Below, piece by piece: positions 8,605 through 54,279 of a stretch of 59,124 nucleotides of DNA (positions are counted from its first letter, which is position 1; every line of letters starts with the position of its first letter). A program made the position numbers and the translations under genes. The DNA comes from Octopus bimaculoides (Eukaryota). Where the stretch lies: assembly GCF_001194135.2 (NCBI RefSeq), contig NC_068988.1, positions 15,065,488 through 15,124,611 of the forward strand. The letters run 5' to 3'. Below the pieces are notes generated by a model. It was not told the DNA's origin and made no database searches. It saw only the letters and a list, made by a program, of their open reading frames with translations.

Positions 8605-9688
8605 ATGGAGGAGAAACTGAGTGAGAGTCAAGTTCATAATAATAATAATAATAATAATAATGGTGTTTCACATCAAACAAAGTAGACACCATACATGTGT
8701 GACATCTGTGGGGAGTCTTTTAAAATGCAAAAATGTTTAATTCAACATCAGTCTTTGCACACAGACTCTGAACTCTATGACTGATATTTGTGGCAAAAAG
8801 TTCTCCACAGATGAAAATTTATCGAACCACAAACATATTCACACAGAAATGAAACCATATTGCTGTGATATTTGTGGGAAGGTACTCTCTGAAAAAAATG
8901 GTTCATCTAACCACAAATGTATTCACACAGAAGAAAAACCGTACCGTTGTGATATTTGTGGTAAAAAATTCCTGAAAAATACTGCTTTGTTGAACCATAT
9001 ACGAATTCACACAGGAGGGAAACCATACGACTGCAGCATTTGTGGGAAAGCATTTTCTCAACATAGTAACTTGTTGAACCATAGAAGAATTCACACTGGT
9101 GAGAAACCACATTGTTGTGATATTTGTGGTAAATCATTCTCTCAAAACAGCAATCTGTTGGTTCATCGCCGTATTCACACAGGAGAAAAACCATTCCACT
9201 GTGATATATGTGGTAAAGCATTTTCTCAGAATGGTAATTTATTAATCCACAGGAAAACTCATGGAGGAGAGAAGCAATATCATTGTGAAATATGTGGTAA
9301 AACATTCTTTGTTAATTCTTCTTTAACTAGACACATACGAATTCACATAGGTGAAAAGCCGTACTCCTGTGATATCTGTGGAAAAACATTCACTGCTTCT
9401 AGTTCATTATCAATGCATAAACTTAACCATACAGGCAATAAGCCATACCACTGTGACATTTGTGATAAAGCTTTCCTTAACAATAACGCTTTGTTGAACC
9501 ACAAAAGAAGTCACACAGGTGAGAAACCATACCAGTGTGACATTTGCAAGAAATCATTCTCTCAGAATAGTAATTTATCGACACACAAACGTATTCACAC
9601 AGGTGAGAAACCGTATCAGTGTGATATCTGTGGTAAATCATTCTCTCAAAATATCAATTTAGTAAACCATAGATGTATTCATGTTTGA
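8605..9688 (+). pseudogene. ZNF-1: disrupted C2H2 zinc-finger paralog; residual open frame 8777-9688 with 10 intact fingers
   Basis: Paralogous ATG at 8605 (MEEKLSESQVHN8GVSHQTK*). In-frame TAG at 8683-8685 where paralogs have AAG. A 2-nt deletion near 8781 (GACTGATATT versus GATTGTGATATT). Downstream frame has CxxC..HxxxH repeats with TGEKP linkers. Confidence 0.8.
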
Positions 9689-10695: not shown

Positions 10696-11000
10696 ATAAT
10701 TTATTCTTTATTAGCCACAAGAGCTTACACAAGACAACATGAAGTGACAAAGCAGGACGATACAATGGGTTTTAAAACGTGTAAACAGTGTAAAAAGCTG
10801 CCCAAGCTTCATGTCTATTTTGGCATGGTTTCTGTGGCTGTATGCCCTTCCTAATGCCAACCACTTTACAGAGTGTACTGTGTGCTTTTTATGTGGCACT
10901 TGCAAGACAAGGATCTCTTGGCTGAAAGAGAGTTGGAGTTGGGAGCATGACCATAAAGGACATACCTGTATGGATGGATGGCCATGGTTTTACTTACATT

Positions 11001-11213
11001 CTTTTCTACTCTAGGCACAAGGCCCGACATTTTGGCAGAGGGGGCCAGTTGATTAGATCAACACCAGTATGCAACTGGTACTTAATTTATCAACCCCGAT
11101 AGGATAAAAGGCAAAGTCAACCTCGGCGGAATTTGAACTCGGAACGTAAAGACATGAAACACTGTTAAGCATTTCGCCCAGCTTGCTAACGTTTCTGCCA
11201 GCTCACTGCCTTA
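11001..11213 (-). mobile_element. tRNA-derived SINE (family A) nested in another repeat
   Basis: Reverse complement of the 15118 SINE. 12-bp TSD TTTACTTACATT at 10989-11000 and 11214-11225. Confidence 0.8.
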
Positions 11214-15117: not shown

Positions 15118-15345
15118 GGCGAGCTGGCAGAAACGTTAGCGCTCCGGGCGAAATGCTTAGCGGTATTTCGTCTGTCTTTACGTTCTGAGTTCAAATTCCT
15201 CCGAGGTCGACTTTGCCTTTCATCCTTTCGGGGTCGATAAATTAAGTACCAGTTACACACTTGGGTCGATGCAATCGACTTAATCTCCTTGTCTGTCCTT
15301 GTTTGTCCCCTCTATGTTTAGCCCCTTGTGGGCAATAAAGAAATA
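15118..15345 (+). mobile_element. Full-length tRNA-derived SINE (family A)
   Basis: GGCGAGCTGGCAGAAACGTTAGC head and GAGTTCAAATTCC B-box-like motif. 11-bp TSD AACCCACTCTA at 15107-15117 and 15346-15356. Related copies near 19905, 24030-24340, 26060, 33420, 35220-35580 and 37445-37665. Confidence 0.85.
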
Positions 15346-17175: not shown

Positions 17176-19029
17176 ATGGAGGTAAAAGTGAGTCAGGTCC
17201 ATAATGAAACACAACCTGATAATAACAATGTTTCTCATCAAACGGAGAAGGCATCATACATGTGTGACATCTGTGGGGACTCTTTCAAAATACAAAAATG
17301 TTTAATTCAACATCAGTCTATGCACACAGATTCCGAACTCTATGATTGTGATATTTGTGGTGAAAAGTTTTCTACGAATGAAAATTTATCCAATCACAAA
17401 CAAATTCATGCAGAGATGAAACCATATTGCTGTGATATTTGTGGAAAGGCACTTTCTGAAAAGAATGGTTTATTTAATCACGAATGTATTCATGCAGAAG
17501 AAAAACCATACCACTGTGATATTTGTGGGAAAGAATTCTCTCAAAACAGTAAGCTATTAACCCATAGACGTATTCACACAGGAGAAAAACCATATCGTTG
17601 TGATATCTGTGGCCAAACTTTTTCTGTTAATGGTTCATTATCTACACACAAACGTAGTCACACAGGAGAAAAACCATATCGTTGTGATATCTGTGGGAAA
17701 ACGTTCTCAGCTAGTAGCACATTGTCTACACATAAACAAATGCATACTGGCGAAAAACCATACCATTGTGATATCTGTAGTAAGTCATTCTCTCTAAATA
17801 GTAATTTGTTGAAACATAGACGCATTCACACAGGAGAGAAACCATATCACTGTGATATTTGTGGTAAAACATTCTCTCATAGTAGTAATTTATTAACCCA
17901 TAGACGTATACATACTGGAGAAAAACCATACCATTGTGATATATGTGGTAAAAAATGCAATACTAAGGAACGTTTATTAAGCCACAAACGCATTCACACA
18001 GGAGAAAAACCATACAAATGTGGTACCTGTGGTAACACATTCTCTGATAAGGGGTATTTACAGTCCCATAAACTGATTCATACAGGAGAAAAACCATATC
18101 ACTGTGATGCATGTGGTAAAAAGTTCTCTACAAAACAATATCTATCTAACCATAAACGTACTCATGCAGGAATAAAACCATGCCACTGTGATATTTGTGG
18201 TAAAGCATTCTCTCGGAATAGTCACTTATTGACTCATAAACGTATTCACACAGGTGAGAAACCATATCACTGTGATATTTGTGGTAAATCGTTCACTCTA
18301 AATGGTCATTTAACTAAACACAAACGTATTCACACAGGCGAGAAACCATATCACTGTGATACCTGTGGTATGACGTTCTCTCAGAGCTCTAATTTACTGA
18401 CCCATAGACGTATTCATACAGGAAATAAACCATACCACTGTGATATCTGTGGTAAAACTTTTTCTGCCAATGATTCTTTATCCAGACACAAACGTATTCA
18501 CACAGGAGAAAAACCATATCATTGTGATATCTGTGGTAAGACATTCTCTGATAGTAGTTCTGTGTCATCTCATAAGCGAGTTCATACTGGTGAAAGGCCA
18601 TATCATTGTGATATCTGTGGTAAAACATTCACTGCTAGTAATTCATTATCTACACACCAAACTATTCACACAGGTGAGAAACCATATCATTGTGATGTTT
18701 GTGGTATAAAATTCTCTAAAAATTGTAATTTAATGAGGCATAAACGTCTTCACACGGGCGAGAAACCATATCACTGTGATTTCTGTGATAAAACATTCAC
18801 CTCAAGTTCTGATTTGAACACACACAAACGTGTTCATACAGGCGAGAAACCATATCACTGTGGTATCTGTGGTAAATCATTCTCTCAGAATAGTCACTTA
18901 TTGAACCATAGACGTATTCACACAGGCGATAAACCTTATCAATGTGATATTTGTAGTAAGGCATTTTCTAGAAAAGGTGACTTATTAAATCACAAACGTT
19001 TACACAGGAAAGAAACTACACCTCTATGA
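17176..19029 (+). CDS. ZNF-2: C2H2 zinc-finger protein, 617 aa, 21 fingers, no recognisable effector domain
   Basis: Uninterrupted ORF of CxxC-x12-HxxxH repeats with TGEKP linkers. Acceptor ends at 16860. Confidence 0.95.
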
Positions 19030-19799: not shown

Positions 19800-19885
19800 G
19801 GCAAAAGTTAAAAATACGTACACCCAGTGTTTTAGGGTTTTTGTTATGCCGAAAACGGCTGGTGTACGTATTCTTTACCTCTGCC
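19800..19885. mobile_element. Short palindromic element with GGCA termini and a TTAGGG core; related copies at 22970-23060 and ~6790-6840
   Basis: GGCAAAAGTTAAAAATACGTACACC / GGTGTACGTATTCTTTACCTCTGCC, embedded in (TA)n. Confidence 0.65.
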
Positions 19886-20916
19886 ATATATATATATTCA
19901 GGGCCAACAGTTCTCAACTGGTACTTATTTTATCAACCCCAAATGGGGTTCAAAGACAAAGTTGACTTTGGCAGAATTTGAACTGAGAACGTAAAGACAG
20001 ACAAAGTGCCTCTAAGCATTTTGCCTGGCATGCTAACATCTCTTGTTTCTCATATTGTATACCCATCCCACAACACCCACACTCACCACTTCTTTCAGTT
20101 CTAGAAAGAGGAAAAACTTCATTAATAAAACTTATGCAATATCTTTGGTAAATATATTTACACTGGGATTTTATGTCAGTGTCATGTAATGTTGGAATTG
20201 TTTTGAATATTTTCCTTTGTTGTAAAATGAAAATAATAAAATACGCAGCTATAATTGTAACCACACTTGACTTTATTAAGCTGTTTGCTATGCTGGATGT
20301 GCAATGTCAGTGTGCATGTTTCACACAGCACTGATGTATTGAGAGAGAAGTTGGGCATGAGAGGAATTGTATGCAGTGTGCAAGAGAGGAGACTATGCTG
20401 GCTTAATCATGTGAATTGGAGGGAAGTTGTGAAGGATGAAGGCCCAGGAAGATAGAGACAAAGTATTGAAGGCTGATCTCAAAATGCTGAACCCTACAAA
20501 AGAGATGTCAGAGGATTGAGACATGTGATACATTGTTGTTCTCACAACAGAATTGAGATTCTAAAAAAAAGCATTGGTGAGGGTACCAGTTCCCTGTAAA
20601 AAGCAGCCAGTACACTGTAAAGAGGTTGGTGTTAGGAAGGGCATTCAGACCAAAACTGACTATGGAACCTGGCGCAGCCCCTGGCCTTGCCAGTTCCTGT
20701 CAAGCTGTCCAACCCATGCCAACATGGAAAATGGCTGTTAAATGATGTTATTGTAACTTCAAATCAGCTCTACCCCAGCAATTGTATAGCACACAGAAAC
20801 TATGACCCATAAATCTATTGTAGAAGTTATACCATTACCTCAGCCTAGCTGAGAGAACTATATTGCACACTTTGACATACAGCAATGAATCTAATAGAAG
20901 GCTGCATAACAATCTA

Positions 20917-21125: not shown

Positions 21126-22876
21126 TAGATATTTTGTGCTCTTTACATTATCTGGTCTATAATTGTATGCCTGTAGCTTCTGGTTGTTGCTGCAGCAGCG
21201 GTGAGTAATAAGGATTTGGTCAGAAGGCAAGAGAAACTGTTACCTCCTGAGGAACAGAAACTGTTCCTCTGCTCTTATACATAAGGTGCATACTTGCACA
21301 ATGTGTACCGGGGGGGGGGGGGTTAATGTAGCTATTGATGCTACTGCTATTTCTGTGTGTCGGCTAACTGAAAGAGGTGTTTTCAGATCAATGTTATTGT
21401 AAATGCAGTAGGATCTCACAAGGTTTGTAGAATGTCACAGGCAATTTTGCAAGTAAGAAGGCATTGTGGTAGACTACCATTGGCAAGTTTAGCAGAATTA
21501 TGGCAATACAACCAGAAAGCATTGTGGCAGTATATCACAGAATCACAAAAATTAATGCAAAGAATTATAGACAATACATCTTGGAAGATTTTTGGAGAGG
21601 AGGAAGAACAAGAAATCTAACTTATAAAATTTGCATAATTTAACAAAATAAGTATGCTTAATAGGATAAGGGATAACCTTTGCAACCTGCATCCAGGAGT
21701 TGAAAAATATTCTTTGCCAAATATTTGAGCCCACATAAACCCAGCTAAATTCTCCCTGCTATTTGCCCTCCAATTCTGTGTGGCCTTTTGCTCAAGACTG
21801 CATGGCTTCTTCATGATTTGTGCAAACCCTCTATAAGAGACATGTAATTAAATTCCACTCTGGTTGGTAGGCTATGAACAAAGGTGCTGCTACTCATTTT
21901 CGAAAGAGATGGTTTCTATCTAACAACATCTATAAAAAAGATATGTGATGTGGTGCTTACTTAATTACAGATCTCTTCCACGGAGGTGTCTGAGTTTACA
22001 TGGTAAATGTTAATGTAATATCTGGCTTGCCTATATCATGTTGTATTCAGTATTCTCCATAAGTAAAATTATGTATCTTTAAAAGTTCATGCAACACATA
22101 TAGGATGATGAAACTGCATGTAATTTAAAACTTGGTCTATACAAAGAAAACATATCGAATTGGCAACACAAGCAAGTTCCTCACATCTCATATATTTAAT
22201 TATATCTCATTTAGTTACCAATAATTGTACACAATGTCTGAAGATCACTTATTCATAATCCACTTAAGGCTAGGGTTTATAAAAATATATTTTGACCTAA
22301 TTAAAGGTCAGGTATTCTGAATTCAAACTTCAAACCAAGGATCTGCATATGGTTAACCTCATAGTGTTTATAGTCATATCAGGTTTCCAAATCTTCCTTT
22401 TACATTCTTGGCACTCAAAAACTATAGTAAGCCAACAAAATAATGCGAGCTAGTCCTACATACACTTAATTCACTTCAAACCATGGCAGTGGACAGACCT
22501 TGAATAAAGTTGCTAGACAAATAACCAGTCAAAAGTAACTGGATACAATTGGTATTCGTCTATGGAGCAGAAATGTGCATTGGACAAATTTAAACCAAAC
22601 ATGCTGTATAATTGATTGTAGAAATAAAAAAATAATATGCAGATGTACTGATCTCCGTATAATTATCTTGGATATACACTCAGTGAAAAATATTTAAAAT
22701 CCAGTGAAGCAAACCCAGGATTTACCAATTGGATGAAATACAGTGGGATTGCTTTCTTTGAGTAATCCTAAGTGCCCCTCGGTGCAGTTAGCCATGACCC
22801 AGATTATAACAGTACTAGCACAGTACCTGCCTCGATATTTTATCCCTATCCATTGTATATATATAAATATGTGTGA

Positions 22877-22971
<95 letters not shown>

Positions 22972-23058
22972 TGAAAGTAAAGAATATGTACACCTGGTGT
23001 TTAGGATTAGGATTTTTGTTATGCTGAAAACGGGTGGTGTACGTATTCTTTACCTCTG

Positions 23059-23089: not shown

Positions 23090-24736
23090 ATCATAAATAT
23101 ATAGGGATTAGCAGAATCCTGCTTCTCCAACATACTGAGAATTCAGAAATAGCAGCCAAAGAACTACTGATTCCAAAACTACAAACTTTTCTCTAAAATT
23201 GATAGCGATATTCATGATACACACAGAACAAAAAACAGAAGAGAAGAGTAAAAAAACAACTTGCCTTTAGTTACTAAAGGCAAGTTGTTTTTTTACTCTT
23301 CTCTTGTTTTTTGTTCTGTATGNNNNNNNNNNNNNNNNNNNNNNNNNNNNNNNNNNNNNNNNNNNNNNNNNNNNNNNNNNNNNNNNNNNNNNNNNNNNNN
23401 NNNNNNNNNNNNNNNNNNNNNNNNNNNNNNNNNNNNNNNNNNNNNNNNNNNNNNNNNNNNNNNNNNNNNNNNNNNNNNNNNNNNNNNNNNNNNNNNNNNN
23501 NNNNNNNNNNNNNNNNNNNNNNNNNNNNNNNNNNNNNNNNNNNNNNNNNNNNNNNNNNNNNNNNNNNNNNNNNNNNNNNNNNNNNNNNNNNNNNNNNNNN
23601 NNNNNNNNNNNNNNNNNNNNNNNNNNNNNNNNNNNNNNNNNNNNNNNNNNNNNNNNNNNNNNNNNNNNNNNNNNNNNNNNNNNNNNNNNNNNNNNNNNNN
23701 NNNNNACACACACACACACATATATATATATAATACAAAGAATATATATACATGTATACACACATATATGTACATACTTACATCTACATGTGTATATATA
23801 TGCATATCAGGGTACAGGACGTTAGAACAATAAACTACAGACAACGGAACGAACACACAGGAAAACGGAAAGCCACTTGGAATATCCTTTCATCAGCTGT
23901 CTCTATTCTATCTAGACGTTTCGAAGATAAGACAGAACGTACTCTAGAATAGTCTCTTCCTGAGTAGTGGATCAACCCACTACACAGAGGATTCCAAGGT
24001 GGCAAACACATATACACATACAAGGCCAATAGTTCTCAACTGGTACTTATTTTATTAACCCCAGAGTTCAAAGACAAAGTTGACTTGGCAGAATTTGAAC
24101 TGAGAACGTAAAGACAGACAAAATGCCTCTAAGCATTTTGCCTGGCGTCCTAGCAATTCTTTTCTACTCTAGGCACAAGGCCCAAAATTTTGGGGGAGAG
24201 GCTAGTCTATTAGATCAACTCCTGTATGCAGCTGGTACTTAATTTATCGACCCCGAAAGGATGAAAGGTCGACCTCGGTGGAATTTGAACTCAGAACGTA
24301 AAGACGGGCGAAGCACCGCTAAGCATTTCGCTCGCCGCCTTACTTCACACTCAGATAGTATCTTCCTCTATAGTTGCTGGCCGACGGAACGTTTGTGAGT
24401 GAATTTGGTAAGCGGAAACTGAAGGATGATAGTTGTATATGTGTATTATAACTATGTATGTATCATTGTTTTTGTATTTATCACCTACCATCGCTTGACA
24501 ACTGTTGGTGTGTTTACGTCCCCGTAACTTAGCGGTTCAGCAAAAAGAATATGACAGAATAAGTATCACCCTTAAAGTACTGGGGTCGATTTGTATGACT
24601 AAATGCTTTAAGGTGGTCCAATGACTAAAGCAAGTAGAAAATAAATTATATATTATTTCTAGGTGAGAATACAGATTTGAACGTAGTACATTTCACTTAA
24701 ACTTAGCCAATACTAATATATCTTGAAACAAAGAAG

Positions 24737-25109: not shown

Positions 25110-26973
25110 TGAAACAACGAAGATATAGCAAGGAAAACTTTATAGTTCGCTGTACCCAGGGACTATGATAACATAAACAAAAGAAAAGTCCCACCATTTT
25201 TAAATTACAGGAAGTCAAACATTAAGAGGAGAAGAGTGATTCCCCCTGTATATTTCATTATAATGATTGTGGAGTTGAACTGCAACGTACTTGTTAAGTA
25301 AACTGAGCTACATGTTTAAAGACGTGGAAAAAATAAGTTTAGACTACATGAAGACAAGGAAACGAGAATCATTATCCAAAGGCAGTAGATGCAATGGGAA
25401 GATTGATTTGAAATTGTGTTTATTTGTACCAGGCGTTAAAAGACAATCAATCATTTCGTGAAAGATCAAATAAAGATGTGAAGTTTTAGATTTACCACAA
25501 AACAATCTTGTAAGTGACAGATGCATTTCAAAAACTTCAGGTAAGTAAACATGGTAGGCATTTCAAATGACGTTTATAATGTTAGATTTTCTTATAAGCC
25601 TAATCTTTTTGTGTTTATCTCACTGTATCATTCCTGTAGGGTATCCCCAATGTTTCTTGCCTGGCGTTATCTTCATTAGTGTGAGACATTGAAACTTTTC
25701 CAATACCCACTATGTACGCATGTGGTTTTAAGTTCAGGCCCTCTGCACGATATATTGGACAAGTGTCTGCTACTATAACCCCGGGCTGTGAGTGAATTTG
25801 GTAGATGAAAACTGGATGGAAGTCCGTTGAGTATGTGTGTTTGTGTTTGTACCGCCACCGCATAACAACTGGTGTTGATTTGTTTACATTCCAGTAACTT
25901 AGCGGTTCGGCAGAAGACACCAATAGAATAAGTACCGCACTTAAAAAAAAGAATAAGCTATAGTATCGCGATTTGTTCCACTAAACTCTTCAAATCTGTG
26001 TCCGAACATGACCCTGAAAAGATATGAGATGGCCAGCACTAAAATAATATCAGAGTGTGAAGTAAGGCAGCGAGCGAAATGCTTAGCGGTATTTCGCCCG
26101 GTCTTTGAGGTCGACCTTTCATCCTTTCGAGATCGATAAATTAAGTACCAGTTGCGTACTGAGGTCGATCTAATCGACTGCCCCCCCCCNNNNNNNNNNN
26201 NNNNNNNNNNNNNNNNNNNNNNNNNNNNNNNNNNNNNNGCCCCCAAAATTTCGGGCCTTGTGCCTATAGTGGAAAAGAATATCTGAGTGTGAGGTGGCAT
26301 TAGAGACTTCTGTAGTAACTGGAAGAACTGTTGTTGTAGCATTGGCTTCATCAACATTTAACGTCCATTTTCCATGCTGGCATGAGTTGGACGCCTTGAC
26401 AGGAACTGGCATGGTTAGTGGCTGTACAGGTTCCATAGTCTGTTTTGGGTTGGTTTCTACAGCTGGATGCCCTTCCTAACGCTAACCACTTTGCAGACTG
26501 TACTGGGTGCTTTTTACATGGCACCGGCATCAGTGCTTTTTATGTGGCACTGAAATTGTTAAAGGCACATTTATCAGACAGAGGCACAGTATCGAGAATT
26601 CAGTGAGTTTTTGGAAGTCCTACATTTGGTTCTAGCTGGCGTTTTGTAGTTTCTATATGTAATACAACAACTACGGTATTCATCATCATCGTCATTTAAT
26701 GTCCATTGTCCATGCTGGCATGGGTTGGACGGTTTGACCAAGGCTGGTAAACTGAGGGACTGCACCAGATTCCAGTCTGATTTGGTACAGTTTCTACACG
26801 TCTTTTGTAGTTTTAAGCATTCAATATTTAATGCAATAAATGGCACATTACAAATGAAATATTTCTCAAAATAAGAGACTTATAGTACGAACTTCATAAG
26901 ACAAAATAGCACATTATAAATGAAATATTTTTAAAAAACAAATATTTTATTGACCAGTTCATTGAAAAGGAAA

Positions 26974-27480
26974 GGGATCTATTTTAAAACGGGGGCCACA
27001 TTTTTCATTAATGTTTTACGTAGTGTTTTTGGTACGGAAAGACTTTCAAACTTCGTATACTTATCTATTTTGTGTTATAGAACAGAAAAATATTTTTGTA
27101 TTCGAATTTATTTCATGTAAAAAATTGTCTTATTTCGATAATTTCAACCAATCACTGACAAGTATTCAGTTGTTTAGATTTACTCCTTTGGCTGATTAAG
27201 CGATGTAAAGCGTATTTAATCTCNNNNNNNNNNAGGGTTAATTGTTTCAGAATCGTTTGTTTATGTAGTCGGCACTTAATGTATATCGGCTGAATGGACG
27301 TCAGTGATTGGTTGAAATTACAGAAATACGACGACTTTAAGATGGAATAACTTATGGATTTCTTTTTTTTTTTAAGAAGACTAAGAGAAAAAGATGTTTT
27401 ATATGACACATTCTACCAGTGTTCCAAGTTTCAAAGTGTTTCGTTAATGAAAAATGTGGCCCCCGTTTTAAAAAAGATCC
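26974..27480. mobile_element. Palindromic non-autonomous DNA element (~510 bp)
   Basis: GGATCTATTTTAAAACGGGGGCCACATTTTTCATTAA / TTAATGAAAAATGTGGCCCCCGTTTTAAAAAAGATCC. Inner inverted AATTTCAACCAATCACTGAC pair. Confidence 0.7.
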
Positions 27481-28166: not shown

Positions 28167-28672
28167 AGCATGGCAAAAATGATTTTCATGGCATTGATTA
28201 GCCTGTAAAAGTGTATCATTACATTGAATATGAAATCAATTCGAACAGAAATTGACCTTGTCAGCCAAACAGAAGAGATCTGGAGCTGCTAACAGAAAAT
28301 GAAATCATAGTTTTTGAAAAATTTTTCGGTAAAAATAATTGATGCAGATTGTTCTTCATTTAAATGATAAGGGATATGATGATACCTGCTGGTATTGCAA
28401 CAGTGTTTGGTCCATTATCTCCTCCATATCTGTGGTAACACCTAACAAACTATGATAGTATGTACCTTCACTATGTAAAATGATTTTTTTTCTCTTTGAA
28501 TAAACTATTGGCCTCTTTCGCAGATTCTTGTGTTTTACAAATGTAGTAATGACTGATTACATCAGTGAGTGATGTTGACATCACTCATCTCAGTCACATA
28601 TCCCCAGGTTGACATCACTCATTTCACTCACATATCTCCATACCATTGTATCTTTACTCTGCATATTATGTA

Positions 28673-29099: not shown

Positions 29100-31193
29100 A
29101 TGGAGGAGGAACTAAATAAAAATCAGGTCCATAATGAAATACAACTTGATTATAATGATGTTTCTCATCAAACAGAGAAGACATCATTCATGTGTGACAT
29201 TTGTGGGGAGTCTTTTAAAATACAAAAATGTTTAATTCAACATCAATCCATTCATACAGATTCAGAGCTCTATAATTGTAAAATTTGTGGTGAAAAGCTC
29301 TCTACAAGTGAAAATTTAATTAACCATAAACATATTCACACAAAAGAAAATCCATACCAGTGTGATATTTGTGGTAAAACATACTCTGCTATTAGATTAG
29401 CAAGAAGACACAGACTTATTCACTCAAGCGGAAAGCCATACCAATGTAATATTTGTGGTAAATCGTATACTGTAAATAGTAGTTTAGCTAAACACAAACG
29501 TAGTCACACAGGAGAGAAGCCATTCAACTGTGATATCTGTGATAAAACTTTCACTGTTAAATTTTCTTTAACTGTACACAAACGTATTCACACTGGAGAA
29601 AAACCATACCACTGTGATATCTGTGGCAAAAAGTTTTCTGCTAGAGGTTTGGCAACAAGACATAAAATTATTCACACAGGCAACAAGCCATACCAGTGTG
29701 ACATTTGTGGTAAGGCGTTCTACCAAGAAAACCATTTATTGATACATAAACGTGTTCACACAGGAGAAAAACCATTTCATTGTGATATCTGTGGTAAAAC
29801 TTTCTCTGTTAAATGTTCTTTAACTATACACAGACGTAATCACACTGGAGAAAAACCATACCGGTGTGATATCTGTGGTAAAACATTCACTGGCAGTACT
29901 CTGGTATCAACACACAAACTTTCTCATACTGGCAAAAGGCCTTACAAATGTGATGTTTGTGGTAAAGGATTCAATATGAATTGTCACTTAACTAAACACA
30001 AACGTATTCACACAGGTGAGAAACCATATCAGTGTGATATCTGTGGTAAGTCATTCTCACAAACTTCAAATTTAACAACCCATAAACGCATTCATACAGG
30101 AGAAAAACCATATCACTGTGATATTTGTGGTAAAAAGTTCTCCACAAACGAACATTTATCTAACCACAAATATATACACACAGGGGTAAAACGATATCAC
30201 TGTGATATTTGTGGTAAAGCATTCTCCCAAAGAGGTAATTTAAAGCCCCATAAACTTCTTCACTCAGGAGAAAAACCATATCACTGTGATATATGTGGTA
30301 AAAATTTCTCTACCAAAGATTATTTATCTAATCACAAACGCATTCATGCAAAGGTTAAAACATGCCGTTGTGATATTTGTGGTAAAGCATTCTCTCGAAA
30401 TAGGGATTTATTGACACATAATCGCATTCACACAGGTGAGAAACCATATCATTGTGATGTTTGTGGTAAATCATTTACTATAAGTGGTCATCTAACTAAA
30501 CACAAACGTGTTCATACAGGAGAAAAACCTTACCATTGTAGCACCTGTGGTAGAATGTTCTCCAATAGTTCAATTTTATTGGCCCATAAACGTATTCACA
30601 CTGGAGAGAAACCATACCACTGTGATATCTGTGGTAAATCATTCACTATAAGTGGATCTTTAGCCAAACATAAGCGTATTCACACAGGAGAAAAACCATT
30701 CCATTGTAATATTTGTGGTAAAACTTTCTCTGAAAGTAGTTCTGTAATATCTCATAAGCGCGTTCACACTGGAGAAAAGCCATATCATTGTGATATCTGT
30801 GGAAAAACATTTACTGCTAGTGTTTCATTATCTACACATCAAACAATTCACACAGGAGAGAAACCATATGACTGTGATGTATGTGGTAAAGCATTCTCGC
30901 GATCTTGTAATTTATCAAGGCATAAGCGTCTTCACACAGGAGATAAACCGTATCATTGTGATTCATGTGAAAAAACGTTTACTTCTAATTCTGATTTAAA
31001 CACACACAAACGTATTCACACAGGAGAGAAACCATATCACTGTGACATCTGTGGTAAGTCATTCTCTCAAAATAGTCATTTATTGAACCATAAACGTATC
31101 CATACAGGTGACAAACCATATCACTGTGATATTTGTGGTAAGGCATTCTCTCAACAAAGTACTTTATCTGTCCACAAACGTATACACAGGTGA
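29100..31193 (+). CDS. ZNF-3: C2H2 zinc-finger protein, 697 aa, 24 fingers
   Basis: Uninterrupted finger array. Acceptor ends at 28917. Confidence 0.95.
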   Translation: MEEELNKNQVHNEIQLDYNDVSHQTEKTSFMCDICGESFKIQKCLIQHQSIHTDSELYNCKICGEKLSTSENLINHKHIHTKENPYQCDICGKTYSAIRLARRHRLIHSSGKPYQCNICGKSYTVNSSLAKHKRSHTGEKPFNCDICDKTFTVKFSLTVHKRIHTGEKPYHCDICGKKFSARGLATRHKIIHTGNKPYQCDICGKAFYQENHLLIHKRVHTGEKPFHCDICGKTFSVKCSLTIHRRNHTGEKPYRCDICGKTFTGSTLVSTHKLSHTGKRPYKCDVCGKGFNMNCHLTKHKRIHTGEKPYQCDICGKSFSQTSNLTTHKRIHTGEKPYHCDICGKKFSTNEHLSNHKYIHTGVKRYHCDICGKAFSQRGNLKPHKLLHSGEKPYHCDICGKNFSTKDYLSNHKRIHAKVKTCRCDICGKAFSRNRDLLTHNRIHTGEKPYHCDVCGKSFTISGHLTKHKRVHTGEKPYHCSTCGRMFSNSSILLAHKRIHTGEKPYHCDICGKSFTISGSLAKHKRIHTGEKPFHCNICGKTFSESSSVISHKRVHTGEKPYHCDICGKTFTASVSLSTHQTIHTGEKPYDCDVCGKAFSRSCNLSRHKRLHTGDKPYHCDSCEKTFTSNSDLNTHKRIHTGEKPYHCDICGKSFSQNSHLLNHKRIHTGDKPYHCDICGKAFSQQSTLSVHKRIHR

Positions 31194-34615: not shown

Positions 34616-36201
34616 AAAATTTGGCTCAACACCACAGATTTGCTTGACCTCAACCACTTTAGCATGTCCCTTAGTGGCTGACAATATGTGCATCTCTGAT
34701 CATGAGCAGGAGTAGTGAGGGAGCATTATAGCCATGTGTTGAGAGGGATTCTTTGGGGTTTGAATAAATACTACAAAACAAAAGTTTGAAGAAAATATTA
34801 GCAATTTTTCATACTTTCTAGGAGTAATAAATGGTACAAACACCCTTTAGTCATAAATGACCTTGGGATTGCACCTAGAAAGTTCCCTTCTGAGGCACAA
34901 GTCCAAGCAGGGTTGTTTGTGGAAGACCAGCAGTCACCTTTGCATACCAACATTCCCTCTCCACACCATCATTGTTATTCAAAGGAAAGGAAAATGCTAA
35001 TGCAGTTTGGCATCAGTGACATTGCAACTCATTTCTACAGTCAAGTGAACTGGAACAACGTGAAATAAAGCATCTTGCTCAAGAACACATCACAGCTTGG
35101 TCTGGAAATCAAACTCAATACCTTGTGATTGTGAGCCCAACGCTACAACCACTGGGCCCATCAATTTGCCACCCCCTTCTCCAAAATTTCAGGATTAGTG
35201 CTCATAGTAGAAAAGATTATTATTATTATGACTAAGGCAGTGAGATGGCACAATTGTTACTGTGCCAGAGAAAATGCTTAGCATAATTTCTTCAACTTTT
35301 CCAGGTTGATAAAATAATTATTAGTTAAGCACTGGGGTCAATATACTCGACTTAAATCTCTATTCAATATTGCTGGTGTTGTGCTAAAATTATCATTATT
35401 ATAATGATTATGATTAAGGCAGTCTTCCGTTCTGAGTTCAAATTCTGCCACGATCGACTTTGCCTTTCATTCATTCATTCGGGATCGATAAAAAAGAACC
35501 AGTTCAGTACTGGGGTCAATTTAACCGACTATTCCGCTTCCTCCAAATTTCAGGCCTTGTGCCTATAGTAGAAAGGATTATTATTATGACTGACCTATGT
35601 AAATGAGAGAAATAAAATTATATTTAAAACCGTGAAGGCTATGCATACAAGCCTTGTTTCAAACCAGCTGCATTAGGAATGATGCAACAAAGTTAAGCCT
35701 TTGTTTTTCAATGACTATTGTGTTCCATACTCTAATTGCCACACACACATATATATTCATATAATGAATTGTGAGTTATAAGTATACAGGAACCTCTTAA
35801 ATTCCACCACATTATTTTTCAAAATTATCGTGAAAATTTGAAAAGCTACAAATGGTTGGAGGAAATTTAACAAGATCCAAAATATATGTGGTCAACCGAA
35901 GATCCCAAATTCCACAACGTAAAACAAACATGGATAAACTTTTTCGAGAAGAAGGCCACATGAGACATGGTTCATTATTACGTGGGTGCACTTCTGAAAT
36001 AGAGTTCAGTCATTTTTCGCTAGGAAAGCCATTCAGAGAGACCTGTCTGACATAATCGACCTGTGACTGATATAGATATAGATATANNNNNNNNNNNNNN
36101 NNNNNNNNNNNNNNNNNNNNNNNNNNNNNNNNNNNNNNTATATATATGTATATATATATATATATATAATTACCCACAATTGTATTCACAAACTCTTGAA
36201 A

Positions 36202-36319: not shown

Positions 36320-38328
36320 GTATGAACACCACAACATTTCCTCTATATCTCTAAATATACACAGTATAATGTAATAATTTATCTGTCAAACTAGGCACCA
36401 ACGAATCGAGTTTCCAATTTCAGATTTCGTTTCTTTTCTCACTACACATTAGTATTAGATCATTTGTTTTTTCACATTCGTTTAGAGCAAGTTGCTTTAC
36501 ACCTATTACACTATTTTTCTTTTGTTTTTTGCTCGGGTCAAACGCTTTAGTTTAACCTTTTGGTCAAACTATGTTGGATCTTACTGAGAAATGCATAAAC
36601 CCCTCGACATAGTAGTATTCTGTCAGCCTTACAATTTTAGAGAAGACGCTTTCCTTCCCAATATTTCCCAGGTTTTAAACTGTTTACATTTTAACTGATA
36701 CTTTACGAATGTATTAAGTTAAATAAATACATTTCTGTGACTATTTGAGCACGTTACTTCCACGTGAGAACACCGATTTCAGTGTGAGCACATTTCACTT
36801 AAACCTGTTTTAATTAGTCAAGAAAAATGCATCTTGAAATAGAGAAGGTATAGCAGGGAAGACTGTCACTCTGAGTACTCGGTCCTCTGGTAATATAAAC
36901 GAAAGTAAAAACCCGCCAGTTTTCAATTTCAGGAAGTCAAACATTGATGACAAGAGTGATTTCCCCTTTATATCTCAGATATTCTACTGCTGGATGTTCT
37001 CTCTGTTCCCAAGCAAAGCAATATTCACCCATGGTTAGACATGATTTTTCAAAATATTGGGAATTAATGACAATGCTTATATGGCAACCGCACTTATTTA
37101 ACAACTGTCGTTGTTGTTGGCACTCCGTCGCTTACGACGTCGAGGGTTCCAGTTGATCCGATCAACGGAACAGTCTGCTCGTGAAATTAACGTGCAAGTG
37201 GCTGAGCACTCCGCATACACGTGTACTCTTAACGTAGTTCTCGGGGATATTCAGTGTGACAAGAAGTGAGAATATGATGAGGAAAAGAGGTAGAGGGGAG
37301 ATATATGGAAGAGCCAGTGATAGAAGGAATAATGAGAGACAGAGAGAGAGAAGAAATAGCAGTTTTATATTTGCTAGTAAAAGAGGAGAGAGCAAGTGAT
37401 GGACACTCACAGAAATGGTAAATGGTTAGCAGTACAGAAGCATAATATTGGTTTCAAATTTTGGCACAAGGCCAGTAAATTTGGGGGAAGGGGTGAAGTC
37501 GATTACATTGATTTGGAATATCAAATGGTACTTATTTTATCAATCCCAAAAGGATGAAAGGCAAAGTTGACCTCGGTGGAATTAGAACTCAGAATGTAAA
37601 GGCTGATGAGATGCTGGTATGCATTTTGCTCAGCGTGCTAACAATACTGCCAGCTCACCGCCTTACAGAAGGGTCATATTGACTAGTAAGAGAGTGAGGT
37701 CAGTGATCACTGTCAGTACATGTAAACTTGGATAACAGCACAGAAAGGTGGTGAAGTGTATCGTACGACAACAGATGAGATATAGTCCTTCATTATGTAG
37801 GGTCATGGTGGAAAAGAGAGGGAGAGGTAGAAATAAAGTGATACAGTTTGGTGGTAGAGTGGAGAGAATATGACCTAATTGATTACTTTTCTCTCTGAAT
37901 GACTCATTGTTATCATTGGACTCTGGTAATTTACTGATATAGTGATGTCTCCGTACATCAGTGGTTAACTGCATCCATTTCATCCACATACGGCTACCAT
38001 TCTCTGTTTTCTCTATATTCTCACTGTGTATTTTATCATTTTCTGTTTTTTCAATGTCTTTGATCAGAAATTTAATCTCTAATATGTTATCATTGTATTG
38101 TTACTTACATCGTACTCCCTTTACATATTTCAGGGTATCTGATGGTATTGAGATTTTGAAGATAAAAGAATGACTTGACCAAAGATATAGGGAACATTGT
38201 TTGAGAAAGTTCACTTTTGAAGAAACTATATTCATTATTGAAATTATCGAAAGAAATATCGCTCTGAAAAATTACAGAACTAAGGGTTTTTTAAAAATTT
38301 TATTTATTTGTTAGTAAATCTGAAAGTT

Positions 38329-40002
38329 ATGGAAGATGAACTGAATGAGAATCAGGTCCATAATGAAACACAGCCTGATGATAATGATGCTTCTCATCAA
38401 ACAGAGAAGGCATCATACATGTGTGACATCTGTGGAAAGTTTTTTAAATTTAGAAGACATTTAATTCGACATCAGTCTGTTCACAAAAGCCAGAAACCAT
38501 ACAAATGTAATGTTTGTGGTAAAACATACTCTTTAAATAGTAGTTTATATAAACACAAACTTTCTCACACAGGAGAGAAACCATACCATTGTGATATCTG
38601 TGGTCAAAATTTCTCTGTTAAATATTCTTTAACTTTACATAAACGTATTCACACAGGAGAAAAGCCATATCACTGTGATATCTGTGGTAAAAGGTTCTCT
38701 GTTAGTAGTTCAGTGGCAGTGCACAAAGTTATTCACACAGGCCAGAGACCATACAAGTGTGATTTTTGTGGTAAAGCATTCAGTTTCAGTTCCTATCTAT
38801 CTAAACATAAACGTCTTCATACAGGGGAGAAACCATGCTGCTGTGATATTTGTGGTAAGACATTCACACAAATTTCTCATTTAAAAACCCATACACGTGT
38901 TCACACAGGAGAAAAACCGTATCACTGTGATGTTTGTGGCAAAAAGTTCTCTACTAATGAACATTTATCTAGTCACAAATATGTTCACACAGGGGTAAAA
39001 CGATATCATTGTGATATTTGTGGTAAAGCATTCCCCCGAAGTGGTAATTTAAAGATCCATAAATTTCTTCATACAGGAGAAAAACCATATCACTGTGATA
39101 TATGTGGAAAAAACTTCTCTACAAATGATTATTTATCCAACCACAAACGCATTCATGCAAAGGTAAAAACATGCCGTTGTGATATTTGTGGTAAAGCATT
39201 CTCTCGAAATAGGGATTTATTGACACATAATCGCATTCACACAGGTGAGAAACCATATCATTGTGATGTTTGTGGTAAATCATTTACTATAAGTGGTCAT
39301 TTAACTAAACACAAACGTATTCACACAGGGGAGAAACCATTCCATTGCAGTATCTGTGGTAAAAATTTTGCTAGAAGTGGATATCTATCCCAACATAGAC
39401 GTATTCACACAGGAGAGAAACCATTTCACTGTGATATCTGTGGTAAAAATTTCGCTTTAAGTGGATCTTTAACCAAACATAAACGTATTCACACAGGTGA
39501 AAAACCATTTCATTGTGATATCTGTGGTAAAACTTTCTCTGAAAGTAGTTCTGTAATATCTCATAAACGTGTTCACACTGGAGAAAAGCCATATCATTGT
39601 GATATCTGTGGAAAAACATTCACTGCTAGTAATTCATTATCTGCACACCAAACTATTCATACAGAAGAGAAACCATATGGCTGTGATGTATGTGGTAAAG
39701 CATTCTCGCGATCTGGTAATTTATTGAGACATAAACATATTCACACAGGACATAAACCATATCAGTGTAGCATATGTGATAAAACATTCTCTTGCAGTTC
39801 TTATTTAGACAAGCACAAACGTGTTCACAATGGAGACAAGCCATACCCTTGTGATATCTGCGGTAAATCATTCTCTCAAAATAATCATTTATTGAATCAT
39901 AGACATATTCACACAGGTGACAAACCTTATCACTGTGATCTTTGTGGTAAAGCATTCTCTCAACAAAGTACTTTGTCTGTCCACAAACGTATACACAATT
40001 GA
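38329..40002 (+). CDS. ZNF-4: C2H2 zinc-finger protein, 557 aa from the ATG, 19 fingers
   Basis: ATG 38329 aligns with the paralog starts (the ORF track uses an upstream TTG). Acceptor ends at 38133. Confidence 0.95.
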   Translation: MEDELNENQVHNETQPDDNDASHQTEKASYMCDICGKFFKFRRHLIRHQSVHKSQKPYKCNVCGKTYSLNSSLYKHKLSHTGEKPYHCDICGQNFSVKYSLTLHKRIHTGEKPYHCDICGKRFSVSSSVAVHKVIHTGQRPYKCDFCGKAFSFSSYLSKHKRLHTGEKPCCCDICGKTFTQISHLKTHTRVHTGEKPYHCDVCGKKFSTNEHLSSHKYVHTGVKRYHCDICGKAFPRSGNLKIHKFLHTGEKPYHCDICGKNFSTNDYLSNHKRIHAKVKTCRCDICGKAFSRNRDLLTHNRIHTGEKPYHCDVCGKSFTISGHLTKHKRIHTGEKPFHCSICGKNFARSGYLSQHRRIHTGEKPFHCDICGKNFALSGSLTKHKRIHTGEKPFHCDICGKTFSESSSVISHKRVHTGEKPYHCDICGKTFTASNSLSAHQTIHTEEKPYGCDVCGKAFSRSGNLLRHKHIHTGHKPYQCSICDKTFSCSSYLDKHKRVHNGDKPYPCDICGKSFSQNNHLLNHRHIHTGDKPYHCDLCGKAFSQQSTLSVHKRIHN

Positions 40003-42615: not shown

Positions 42616-43295
42616 NNNNNNNNNNNNNNNNNNNNNNNNNNNNNNNNNNNNNNNNNNNNNNNNNNNNNNNNNNNNNNNNNNNNNNNNNNNNNNNNNNNNN
42701 NNNNNNNNNNNNNNNNNNNNNNNNNNNNNNNNNNNNNNNNNNNNNNNNNNNNNNNNNNNNNNNNNNNNNNNNNNNNNNNNNNNNNNNNNNNNNNNNNNNN
42801 NNNNNNNNNNNNNNNNNNNNNNNNNNNNNNNNNNNNNNNNNNNNNNNNNNNNNNNNNNNNNNNNNNNNNNNNNNNNNNNNNNNNNNNNNNNNNNNNNNNN
42901 NNNNNNNNNNNNNNNNNNNNNNNNNNNNNNNNNNNNNNNNNNNNNNNNNNNNNNNNNNNNNNNNNNNNNNNNNNNNNNNNNNNNNNNNNNNNNNNNNNNN
43001 NNNNNNNNNNNNNNNNNNNNNNNNNNNNNNNNNNNNNNNNNNNNNNNNNNNNNNNNNNNNNNNNNNNNNNNNNNNNNNNNNNNNNNNNNNNNNNNNNNNN
43101 NNNNNNNNNNNNNNNNNNNNNNNNNNNNNNNNNNNNNNNNNNNNNNNNNNNNNNNNNNNNNNNNNNNNNNNNNNNNNNNNNNNNNNNNNNNNNNNNNNNN
43201 NNNNNNNNNNNNNNNNNNNNNNNNNNNNNNNNNNNNNNNNNNNNNNNNNNNNNNNNNNNNNNNNNNNNNNNNNNNNNNNNNNNNNNNNNNNTGTG

Positions 43296-44317: not shown

Positions 44318-46231
44318 TCATATTTTTCTGTCATTCCTGCCATCCATGGACGGAACAGAGTCTTTCTCTCCCGATCTCCCCTGATTTTAAATGGTTTATA
44401 GAAAAACAATTTTACTTCTATTCTACAAATGCAAAAACGACCACAATATTAGTAATTCTGAGTACGTTATTTTAAACTGGAGAATACTGACTCGAAAGTG
44501 AGTACATTTGAATATGTTTTAATTAGCCAATAATAATATATCTTCTAATCTAGGAGATATAACTGGAAAGACTTTATCGCACGGAGAATATAGTGTTTTA
44601 GTATTATAAACAAGAGAACAGACCCCCCACCATTTTTCATATACAATTAAACATTGAAAGACAGAGTGATTTCCCTTGTATATCTAATAGATTGTGGATT
44701 AAACCGCAAAGACCCTGCTCGATATAAATAAAGCTATGTACTTTTTCACAGCATACCTAATGACGAGCGTAATACAATATCTTAGTATTGTGTAGTCTTC
44801 ATTAAAAAATCCCCAATGGTCACGCTTTGGCCAATATACATAGATGAAATTACATGCATATGCAGTATCTAGTGTCCAATGATAGCATCATGCTCCACTA
44901 TATGCTTTGGTATGGTTTCTACAATTGGATGCTCTTTCCTAACATCACTATTTGAGGTTTTGCTGTACAGTTCACAAGACTGCTAAGGGAAGTGAGGGCT
45001 TTATGCTAGAGGACGAAGATGCAAAGTATGAGCGCTGGGGGACTAGGTTTTTGAAGTGGAGTTGCATGGTTAAAACCATAGAACATGTTATTGTTAATGA
45101 GATAAGCTTTTAAAAGAAAACGAAGGTCATAGTCTTTGAAAAATTCTTTGACAAAAAGAATCATTTCTGAAGGTTGCCACCATTATCCACATAACTGTGA
45201 ATCTCACATTGTGTTCATTTCCATAGTAATAAGCAAAGCTATAGTCTGCCCTGCTTCCATTGTAACAAAGACGCGTTGTACTTAGCACGACTGTGACACG
45301 TTCATCACCACAAGTTTTGATGAGCGATATCATTTTGTGCCTGGGCCATTTCTGTCAATTTCTAATAGACAGCTATCACACAGAAAATGCAAGCTTCCCA
45401 TTCCTGTTTTCTGATTGGACTAAAAATGATCAAACTTTGAAAACTCTGTAACATTTTTCTAAATTTTTCTATGAATAAATGAATCCCAAATTCGGATTCA
45501 GTGTGAAAAATTGCATCAATATTTCAAATTTGAAAAATTTCAATGGATTTGAAAATTTCCAAATCTGTGACAGTAGCTGTAAAAATTTGGCAAAAGTAAT
45601 TGATGCAGGGTCTGTTGTTCTTGATTTAATGATAAGGAATACTATGATACCTGCTGGTATTGCAACAGTGTTTGGTCCATTATCTCCTCCATATCTGTGG
45701 TAACACTCAACAAATTATGATAGTATGTACCATCACTAAGTAAAATGATTTGTTTTTTCTTTGAATAAATCATTGGCCTTAGTCACATCTGTGACTGAGG
45801 CCAATGATTTACAGATGGAGTAATGACTGATTACATCCGTGAGTGATGTTGATTACTCATGTGGTTGATATCACTCATTTCAGTCATCTTCATACCATTG
45901 TTTCTTTGCTCTGGGTGCTTATATATCCTTGTCTCTCTTAACATTTGTTTCCAATATTGATGGTCAGAAATCTCTTCTCTAAGTGTCAGCGTTATATTGT
46001 TGCTTATATCATATTCTCTTTATATATTTCAGGATATATGATGGCATCGAGACTTTGGAGACTAATGAATGACATTACCAAAGATATAGGGAATCATGTT
46101 TCACAAAAATCACATTGAAGAAACTATACCCTATTTTTGAAAATAAAGAAGAAAAAAAAAAAACAGAATTATTTCTCTGTTGAAAATTACAGGATAAGGT
46201 TTTCTACTTTTCTGAAGGAGATTTGAAAATT

Positions 46232-48160
46232 ATGGAGGAAAAACCGAGTGAGAATCAGATCCATACGAAAAAACAAAATGATAATGATGTTTCTCATCAA
46301 ACAGATAAGACATCATACATGTGTGACATCTGTGGGAAATCTTTTAAAGTTAGAAGGTATTTTGTTCGACATCAGTCTGTTCACAAAAGCCAGAAACCAT
46401 ACCACTGTGATATTTGTGGTAAAGCATATGCTTTAAAAAGTAGTTTATCTAAACATCAACGTAGTCACACTGGAGAGAAACCATACTGTTGTGATATTTG
46501 TGGTCACAGTTGCATTTTTAAATTTTCTTTAATTATACACAAACGTACTCACACAGGAGAAAAACCATATGATTGTGATATTTGTGGTAAGAAATTCTCT
46601 ACTAGCGGTGCTGTAACAACACATAAGATTATTCATACAGGCCACAAACGGAAACTGTACCAGTGTGACATTTGTGGTAAGGCATTCTCCCAAGATAACA
46701 ATTTAGTGATACATAAACGTGTTCACACAGGAGAGAAACCATATCATTGTGATATCTGTGGTAAAACTTTCTCTGTTAAATGTTCTTTAACTATACACAG
46801 ACGTAATCACACTGGAGAAAAACCATACCGGTGTGATATCTGTGGTAAAACATTCACTGGCAGTACTCTGGTATCAACGCACAAGCTTACTCACTCAGAC
46901 AAGAAACCGTACAAATGTGATGTTTGTGACAAAGCATTTCATCTGAATAGTCTTTTGAATAAACACAAACGTATTCACACAGGTGAGAAACCATACCACT
47001 GTGATATTTGTGGTAAGTCATTCTCACAAACTTCAAATTTAAAGGCACATAAGCGTATTCATACAGGAGAAAAACCATATCACTGTGATATTTGTGGTAA
47101 AAAGTTCTCTATAAATATACATTTATCTAATCACAAAAATAGTCACACTGGGGTAAAACGATATCACTGTGATATTTGTGGTAAAGCATTCTCTCAAAGA
47201 GGCAATTTAAAGATTCATCAACTTCTTCATACGGGAGAAAAACCATACCAGTGTGATATATGTGGTAAAAATTTCTCTACAAGTCAGTATTTATCAAATC
47301 ACAAACGTACTCATGCAGAGGTAAAAACCTGCCGCTGTGATATTTGTGGTAAAGCATTCTCTCGAAATAGGGAGTTATTGATCCATAATCGTATTCACAC
47401 AGGTGAGAAACCATACCATTGCAATATTTGTGGTAAATCTTTCACTACAAATGGTCATTTAACTAAACACAAACGTGTTCATACAGGAGAGAAACCGTAC
47501 CATTGTGATGTCTGTGGTAGAATGTTCTCTGGTAGTTCTAATTTATTGACCCATAAACGTATTCACTCAGGAGAAAAACCATTCCACTGTGATATTTGTG
47601 GTAAAAGTTTCACTGTAAGTGGAACTTTATCCAGACACAAACGTATTCACACAGGTGAAAAACCATTCCATTGTGATATTTGTGGTAAAACCTTCACTGA
47701 TCACAGTTCCCTACATTCTCATAAACGTGTTCATACTGGTGATCGGCCATATCGTTGTAATATTTGTGGTAAAACATTCACTGCCAGTGTTTCATTGTCT
47801 GCACACCGTATTGCTCATACAGGAGAAAAACCATATGGTTGTGATATCTGTGGTAAATCATTCTCACGATCTTGTAATTTATCGAGGCATAAACATCTTC
47901 ACACAGGAAAGAAGCCATATCATTGTGATTCATGTGAGAAAACTTTCACTTCTAATTATGATTTAGCCATACATAAACGTATTCACACAGGAGAGAGACC
48001 ATACCCCTGTGATATCTGTGGTAATGCATTTGCTCAGAAGAGTCATCTATTGAGGCATAAACGTATTCACACAGGTGATAAACCTTATTGCTGTGATATT
48101 TGTAATAAAGCATTCTCTCAACAAAGTACTTTGTCAACCCATAAACGCATACACAAATGA
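46232..48160 (+). CDS. ZNF-5: C2H2 zinc-finger protein, 642 aa from the ATG, 22 fingers
   Basis: ATG 46232 aligns with the paralog starts. Acceptor ends at 46032. Confidence 0.95.
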   Translation: MEEKPSENQIHTKKQNDNDVSHQTDKTSYMCDICGKSFKVRRYFVRHQSVHKSQKPYHCDICGKAYALKSSLSKHQRSHTGEKPYCCDICGHSCIFKFSLIIHKRTHTGEKPYDCDICGKKFSTSGAVTTHKIIHTGHKRKLYQCDICGKAFSQDNNLVIHKRVHTGEKPYHCDICGKTFSVKCSLTIHRRNHTGEKPYRCDICGKTFTGSTLVSTHKLTHSDKKPYKCDVCDKAFHLNSLLNKHKRIHTGEKPYHCDICGKSFSQTSNLKAHKRIHTGEKPYHCDICGKKFSINIHLSNHKNSHTGVKRYHCDICGKAFSQRGNLKIHQLLHTGEKPYQCDICGKNFSTSQYLSNHKRTHAEVKTCRCDICGKAFSRNRELLIHNRIHTGEKPYHCNICGKSFTTNGHLTKHKRVHTGEKPYHCDVCGRMFSGSSNLLTHKRIHSGEKPFHCDICGKSFTVSGTLSRHKRIHTGEKPFHCDICGKTFTDHSSLHSHKRVHTGDRPYRCNICGKTFTASVSLSAHRIAHTGEKPYGCDICGKSFSRSCNLSRHKHLHTGKKPYHCDSCEKTFTSNYDLAIHKRIHTGERPYPCDICGNAFAQKSHLLRHKRIHTGDKPYCCDICNKAFSQQSTLSTHKRIHK

Positions 48161-49990: not shown

Positions 49991-51886
49991 CTTAAAGTTT
50001 CTATATAAAAATCTTACATAATCAACTTATCTAGATTCAATTAAGATGAATACTTATGTCCTGTTATAGATTCTCCCCACTGCTTGAATTATTTATGCAG
50101 CACACTAATTACTCATTTCTTAACTAATCTTTAATTTAGCTCTTAGATATTACTCCTAATTTAATTAAATTCAACTATAGTAAACCTAATATTATCAGGA
50201 GGCAGATGCAGTGAGCGATAAACAAAGATGGAGAGATGTAAGGTGAAAGACACAGAAGTCGCTCGGGCAGGATACATCAGAAGGTAGGGGGTGATGAATT
50301 GCAAGATGTAGGAGTGGTGAGGAGGGGGATGTTGGGGGTACATAAGGGTGGGTTTAGTAGTGCATGATGGCAGATATGAGAAGGTGCTGAGAAAGCAGAT
50401 ACGTTAGGTAATAACATGGAGTATGGTGGAGGAGAGAGGTAACTGAAAGCATTGAAAGGAGGTGATTGGTAAAAGGACATGTGGGCATGGGACATCATGA
50501 AACGTGAACAACAAAAAATACACAGTACAATTACATGGAATATGAACTATTTTTTCAAACAACGAAAGACACAAATGGAAAACAAGACAAGCAATATAAA
50601 GAACGACCCTTTATCAGTTGTTGGCTGTTTTTCTACTCTCGTATTTCGAGCATGTAACAACAATATACACTTTCGATAAAACAGTTGCCTCCGTAAAGCA
50701 AATTAAATAAAATTTGAGATCTTGCGGAGGGTCAAAATCGGTAACACAACCAGGACAGTGAAAACAAACAAGAAGAGCTGCTAAGTCTAAACGAGGTTGT
50801 GGCAAGCACATAAATCAAGCTTGAACAGGAGACAGACAAGAACACGTCTTCCTTGTTCCAGCTACAATGGAGAGAAAGAAAGAAGCACAAGCTAGAAGAA
50901 GAAAGAAAGATGCCCAATGCATATTATTGAAAGTTTATTAAAGTAATTATATTACACAATAAAAATAAAAAATTGCTTAATGAGCAATTTACATCTCGTG
51001 ATTCCCTGAGTTGAATTGAAATTATATAACAACTTTCTTTTTGCACAAGAATTGTAAATTTCGGTTTAAAAATAAACATCTCTCTCTTTTACTCACATAT
51101 ATACACATTAATATCTTTAAAAAAATCTCTCTCTATATATGTTTTATATATATATGTATTATGGCAAGACTTCCTTTTGTNNNNNNNNNNNNNNNNNNNN
51201 NNNNNNNNNNNNNNNNNNNNNNNNNNNNNNNNNNNNNNNNNNNNNNNNNNNNNNNNNNNNNNNNNNNNNNNNNNNNNNNNNNNNNNNNNNNNNNNNNNNN
51301 NNNNNNNNNNNNNNNNNNNNNNNNNNNNNNNNNNNNNNNNNNNNNNNNNNNNNNNNNNNNNNNNNNNNNNNNNNNNNNNNNNNNNNNNNNNNNNNNNNNN
51401 NNNNNNNNNNNNNNNNNNNNNNNNNNNNNNNNNNNNNNNNNNNNNNNNNNNNNNNNNNNNNNNNNNNNNNNNNNNNNNNNNNNNNNNNNNNNNNNNNNNN
51501 NNNNNNNNNNNNNNNNNNNNNNNNNNNNNNNNNNNNNNNNNNNNNNNNNNNNNNNNNNNNNNNNNNNNNNNNNNNNNNNNNNAGGAAATCTTTCCATGTT
51601 TTATATATATGTGTTATATTTATATATATATATTTATTACGGAGATGTACTTGCAAAGCAAGTGACCTGATCTGATATCGTGTGCTGTAACAAAAACAAT
51701 TGCAGCGTGGAAGGTGTTTATAAGCCATTTAAAAACACAAAAACCGTTAGATTCACTTCAACATTTAAATTTAGTTTCCCAAAATATTTTCGTTGCTTAG
51801 AGTCCGCGACATGTTCATTGACAAAATTCCGATATATATGTGTGTGTGTGTATCCATGTCCAGAATTCCCTTAATATATTCTGTAA

Positions 51887-54206: not shown

Positions 54207-54279
<73 letters not shown>

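Follow-up and report, generated by a model that had tools for sequence, protein, structure and literature searches.

Recurrent gene conversion as the probable source of sequence tracts shared among tandem poly-zinc-finger genes of Octopus bimaculoides

The stretch of Octopus bimaculoides DNA analyzed here, called the window throughout, is 59,124 nt long (approximately 15.065–15.125 Mb of chromosome CM046608.1 in assembly GCA_001194135.2) and carries six tandem, single-exon poly-C2H2 zinc-finger genes (Z1–Z6), all on the same (+) strand, with Z1 being a pseudogene. The intact members are Z2 (17176–19029; 617 aa, 21 fingers), the most divergent of them and used as the outgroup; Z3 (29100–31193; 697 aa, 24 fingers); Z4 (38329–40002; 557 aa, 19 fingers), lacking three fingers found in Z3, Z5, and Z6; Z5 (46232–48160; 642 aa, 22 fingers); and Z6 (55094–57100; 668 aa, 22 fingers). 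Z3, which proved to be the hub of the exchanges described below, is identified by its open reading frame, by Pfam (zf-C2H2 and zf-H2C2_2, 22 stretches each), by the bootscan, and as a called gene of GCA_001194135.2 at CM046608.1 15,094,587–15,096,680. In Pfam terms, the intact proteins consist of a 30-aa leader followed by fingers only, without KRAB, SCAN, or any other domain, and the alignment shows them to be colinear, finger position matching finger position. No further zinc-finger gene is found in the 10 kb downstream of the window.

The decayed paralog Z1 (about 8605–9688, +) was recognized by ORF analysis as a 303-aa frame with 10 fingers, truncated at the 3′ end relative to the other genes, and a look-up shows it to be absent among the called genes. 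Its leader and first finger contain an in-frame stop, a poly-Asn run, and a frameshift after ...SELYD; the first finger, broken by a stop codon, lies upstream of the 303-aa ORF and in another frame. The grouping of first fingers proposed by an earlier sequence-only reading of this DNA, namely Z1, Z2, Z3, and Z6 against Z4 and Z5, holds. Exact matches between Z1 and the other genes of the array all stay below 40 nt.

Two features of finger arrangement were also observed. The three-finger gap of Z4 (38671–38775, against alignment columns 171–257 of Z3, Z5, and Z6) has its junction inside a finger, as would be expected if recombination between fingers three units apart had deleted the segment in frame. 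In Z3, the finger starting at aa 144 (29517–29624) agrees with the one starting at aa 228 (29769–29876), three positions further on, at about 90% of its nucleotides, and the same relation holds across the paralogs (81–96 matches of 108); this suggests that either three fingers were duplicated within the gene long ago or an exchange took place out of register. Outside the genes, the window contains a dispersed intergenic repeat of about 130–200 nt, present in both orientations with 72–88% identity, which may be SINE-like (copies at 11000–11210, 15120–15280, 19885–20044, 24007–24331, 35425–35584, and 37442–37665, among others), long TA/TG dinucleotide microsatellites at 22850–22980 and 54190–54280, and a 175-aa ORF at 868–1395 without a Pfam match, which may be a mobile-element remnant.

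At the base level, the sequence derives from one assembly of short-read shotgun contigs dating from 2015, which we take to have been built with Meraculous from Illumina reads. These contigs were later rescaffolded with Hi-C (PMC9068888). The fragmentary short-read origin is marked by seven N gaps, all intergenic (23323–23705, 26190–26238, 27224–27233, 36087–36138, 42616–43291, 51181–51582, and 52876–53294); each gene lies in a gap-free block of 6–9 kb or more. Among the collections searched, exact-protein look-ups of Z3, Z4, Z5, and Z6 found them in GCA_001194135.2 only. A search with the full-length Z3 protein, in whose ranking long multi-finger proteins dominate, yielded no cephalopod relatives, all hits being distant zinc-finger proteins from vertebrates and invertebrates with at most 60% identity, and a search with a 42-aa family-specific leader profile gave a single match, an unrelated 69-aa fragment.

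Nucleotide identity is 82–85% among Z3–Z6 and 77–80% to Z2, with corresponding dS values of about 0.40–0.45 and 0.65–0.73; dN/dS among the paralogs is 0.22–0.40. The genes are thus under purifying selection and, apart from the tracts that they share, old. Dispersed repeats excepted, the intergenic DNA can be aligned only over about 300–800 nt beside the genes.

Against this background stand three stretches of perfect identity, all in the + orientation: tract 1 (Z3 29777–29911 = Z5 46744–46878; 135 nt), tract 2 (Z3 30357–30491 = Z4 39166–39300; 135 nt), and tract 3 (Z4 39863–39939 = Z6 56964–57040; 77 nt). All three had been pointed out by the sequence-only reading, and re-examination finds zero mismatches in each; apart from them, no exact repeat in the window exceeds 63 nt. 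Tract 1 covers a whole finger (VKCSLTIH helix), the linker, and most of the next finger (GSTLVSTH helix), and tract 2 contains the helices RNRDLLTH and ISGHLTKH, so that the helices previously assigned to them are all correct; each spans about 1.6 fingers. On both sides, the tracts give way to divergent sequence, with graded flanks (7–9 mismatches per 90 nt). A recount of Z3 against Z5 agrees with the numbers reported earlier: ahead of tract 1, 7 of the 83 nucleotides that can be aligned as far as a 6-nt indel are mismatched, and behind it 22 of 90. Over the columns of tract 1, Z6 and Z2 differ from the shared Z3/Z5 sequence at approximately 18–28 sites. The tract ends fall off the finger boundaries, the left one inside a linker codon and the right one inside a recognition helix, and cassette-precise boundaries are accordingly rejected. 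Tracts 1 and 2 agree in length to the nucleotide (135 nt), and they begin at almost matching phases of the 84-nt finger repeat, 8 nt apart. The equal length and similar phase may reflect mere coincidence, the placement of variable codons, or an assembler effect.

The tracts are far beyond chance expectation. In a GENECONV-style permutation of polymorphic sites, tracts 1 and 2 each have a global p value of ≤0.0005, and tract 3 has one of 0.0135. Variation in rate among sites, named by the sequence-only reading as something that could undo its case, was built into a second null model, in which a column's chance of a mismatch scales with how variable that column is in the other nine pairs. Over 100,000 simulations, taken family-wise, the longest run under this model was 120 nt, so that runs of 135 nt were never reached (p ≤ 1e-5), and the 77-nt run had a family-wise p value of about 0.0095. 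As had also been claimed, the identity extends to synonymous sites as well as to the recognition helices: over the tract columns, dS is 0 in the matching pair, across about 28–30 synonymous sites, and 0.31–0.9 in the other pairs. Since dS = 0 is confined to the matching pair, nucleotide-level constraint or selection is excluded as the cause of the identity. Selection on an embedded nucleotide element was considered and rejected on the same ground, the identity being pair-specific and not common to all paralogs.

Older patches were sought by maximal-scoring-segment tests. An imperfect Z3/Z6 segment (30090–30335 against 56000–56245, +) has 12 mismatches in 246 nt (p = 0.001; bootscan support of 99% for Z6), and an imperfect Z3/Z4 segment (30722–30904 against 39531–39713, +) has 11 mismatches in 183 nt (p = 0.011; bootscan support of 98–99%). 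Another Z3/Z4 segment (30150–30489, +; 340 nt, 20 mismatches) holds tract 2, a Z4/Z6 segment (39867–39990, +; 124 nt, 3 mismatches) overlaps tract 3, and the same test detected a Z2/Z4 segment at 18492–18665. Biallelic informative sites yield all ten possible splits at about equal frequencies, as a star-like and saturated history would produce; in place of split counts, the analysis relied on run-length tests, distance-based windows, and bootscan. When Z3 was bootscanned in 168-nt windows, the nearest paralog was, in order, Z4 (97%), Z5 (94–100%), Z6 (99%), and Z4 (100%), followed by an ambiguous stretch, Z4 again (98–99%), and finally Z6 (79–90%), so that it changes at least five times with 79–100% bootstrap support. 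By their flanking DNA, Z3 and Z5 belong together, whereas by the 5′ part of the coding sequence Z3 falls with Z2 and Z6 and Z5 joins Z4. From these switches and conflicting groupings, it follows that no single tree fits the genes, as the sequence-only reading had maintained. Beside Z3 and Z5, a 63-nt exact non-coding match lies upstream of both genes (28379–28441 = 45644–45706), and the two share extra flanking homology of 79–85% (28317–28661 against 45581–45913, as well as the downstream flanks), which the other genes do not have.

Exchange between the genes has recurred: three perfect tracts and several 90–97% identical patches of different ages are present, each patch bringing whole recognition helices from one paralog to the same finger position of another. 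The outcome is locally homogenized gene pairs, in which Z3 is matched to Z4, Z5, and Z6 over different segments. The exchange partners lie on the same strand, 9–17 kb apart, and are colinear; all detected exchanges are in register, with patch sizes of 77–340 nt. We consider recurrent germline interlocus (non-allelic) gene conversion between the tandem paralogs to be the best explanation of this sequence pattern, with a probability of roughly 0.8. Graded flanks and imperfect segments are what repeated conversion at different times would leave. Four features expected of interlocus conversion are found at the locus, namely homology for pairing, bounded tracts of high identity, pair-specific identity at synonymous sites, and incongruence of trees along the gene; the patch sizes lie within the reported range of interlocus conversion tracks, the human means being 167–585 bp (PMC3790853), and are counted in favor of conversion. 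In the predicted mechanism, repair of a double-strand break, probably in meiosis, would involve out-of-place pairing of a paralog with the colinear region of its neighbor, for which the conserved finger framework and the TGEKPY linkers would provide homology, and a patch of about 80–350 nt would be copied without crossover. That sequence passed one way only and in the germline is our inference from the pattern, as any direction of transfer would be. The sequence-only reading had likewise arrived at ectopic gene conversion, and the tracts far beyond chance and the pair-specific dS of 0 speak for that choice. Its description of Z3 as the mosaic is only one way to read the segments shared with Z4, Z5, and Z6; Z3 could equally have been the donor to all three.

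An origin of the identity in the assembly itself has to be weighed against gene conversion. A short-read assembler may have created or sharpened the identity by closing gaps with the wrong paralog or by merging stretches, in which case the true tracts would be less similar or not shared at all. The nature of the contigs, short-read shotgun products only rescaffolded with Hi-C, the seven N gaps in the window, the exact 135-nt length of the top two tracts, and the fact that, in the collections searched, one assembly only carries the genes all count in favor of such an artefact. However, the tracts adjoin no gap, the nearest N run being at least about 2.5 kb from any of them (closed gaps being invisible), and a k-mer graph assembler can be reasoned to keep stretches of 15% divergence apart rather than to invent identity. 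Moreover, similarity is unusually high already in the sequence flanking tracts 1 and 2 and changes there by degrees, and the imperfect mosaic segments, which cannot be collapses, give the same pattern of exchange. We therefore regard an artefact as unlikely, and at worst it would have rounded a true identity of 97–99% up to 100%.

Reciprocal non-allelic recombination is another process to be considered, in which unequal crossing-over during expansion and contraction of the array would have made chimeric genes. Finger numbers varying from 19 to 24 and the three-finger loss of Z4, with its junction inside a finger, are in its favor, as is the extra flanking homology of Z3 and Z5 despite the different grouping of their 5′ coding parts; this last conflict shows that larger-scale recombination has acted on the array. 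As a source of the perfect tracts, it appears very unlikely, because these are short internal patches, each needing two closely spaced crossovers, and because neither the order of the genes nor the unique intergenic DNA separating the participants has been disturbed, although a double unequal crossover and conversion would be indistinguishable by footprint. A dedicated or targeted system, possibly somatic (e.g., neuronal), which swaps helices between neighboring zinc-finger genes and thereby diversifies DNA-binding repertoires, is extremely improbable in our judgment, and nothing in the data calls for it. All that speaks for it is that the tracts hold recognition helices and extend over about 1.6 fingers. 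On the other side, the exchanges are same-position ones between intact, expressed-type paralogs under purifying selection, the sole pseudogene, Z1, donates nothing, arrays of donor cassettes are absent, and the tract ends miss the finger boundaries; somatic events would be invisible in a reference genome, and a known general process (PMC2604467) explains the pattern fully.

Gene conversion therefore accounts for the pattern without the novelty originally attached to it. Combinatorial shuffling of finger cassettes, as put forward in the sequence-only reading, does not agree with exchanges that take place at the same position in colinear paralogs and do not move fingers to new positions; since all of them are of this kind, existing variants are mixed and locally homogenized. 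The suggestion of an undescribed diversification system is likewise not supported, in view of the published conversion of poly-zinc-finger genes (PMC2604467) and of a locus without silent donors, a single acceptor, or any somatic or programmed sign. Because complete recognition helices have been moved between paralogs, binding specificity can change, or be equalized, faster than by point mutation. The practical consequences are modest. Unless converted segments are masked, as Emerson and Thomas did for vertebrates (PMC2604467), they will distort per-gene trees, the dating of duplications, and tests for positive selection on the approximately 1,800 C2H2 genes of the octopus.

The conversion at this locus is worth comparing with other systems that exchange short patches of sequence. 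Chicken and rabbit immunoglobulin V pseudogene conversion and the cassettes of antigenic variation resemble the octopus genes in the templated transfer of short patches from paralogous donors. In such programmed systems, arrays of silent donors feed a single expressed acceptor, and the events are somatic or clonal. None of these traits is seen at the octopus locus, where the exchange partners are all intact ORFs. The PRDM9-type minisatellite is likewise a C2H2 array in which recombination reshuffles recognition helices, and there the DNA of the fingers in an array is almost uniform, and recombination takes place both inside an allele and between alleles. Finger pairs within the octopus genes have a mean nucleotide identity of 67.4% (maximum, 90.5%), and, given this low within-gene identity and the exchange between separate genes, the array is not a PRDM9-like minisatellite. 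Human segmental duplications and tandem families (olfactory receptors, MHC, globins, and protocadherins) share with the octopus genes homology-driven, non-allelic patches of a few hundred nucleotides that result in mosaics and incongruent trees. The octopus array differs from them in that the 84-nt finger periodicity offers many out-of-register options, and the exchanges are nonetheless all in register. In poly-zinc-finger genes themselves (KRAB, SCAN, and other C2H2), Emerson and Thomas in 2009 applied GENECONV to lineage-specific expansions in many animals and described short conversion tracts (PMC2604467); the octopus genes are like these cases in the GENECONV-type short tracts, in the clustering of recent paralogs, and in the location within the finger-coding exon, and differ from them in the host, a cephalopod, and in having only a 30-aa leader without KRAB or SCAN. 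A 2025 paper on the cephalopod C2H2 expansion nowhere uses the words conversion and recombination (PMC12513265), and the paper on chromosome-scale cephalopod genomes calls on gene conversion in the case of protocadherin arrays (PMC9068888). With conversion already published for poly-zinc-finger genes and invoked for cephalopod protocadherins, the present case is a small addition, in which an ordinary process of tandem gene families, involving no new mechanism, acts on the zinc-finger genes of an octopus.
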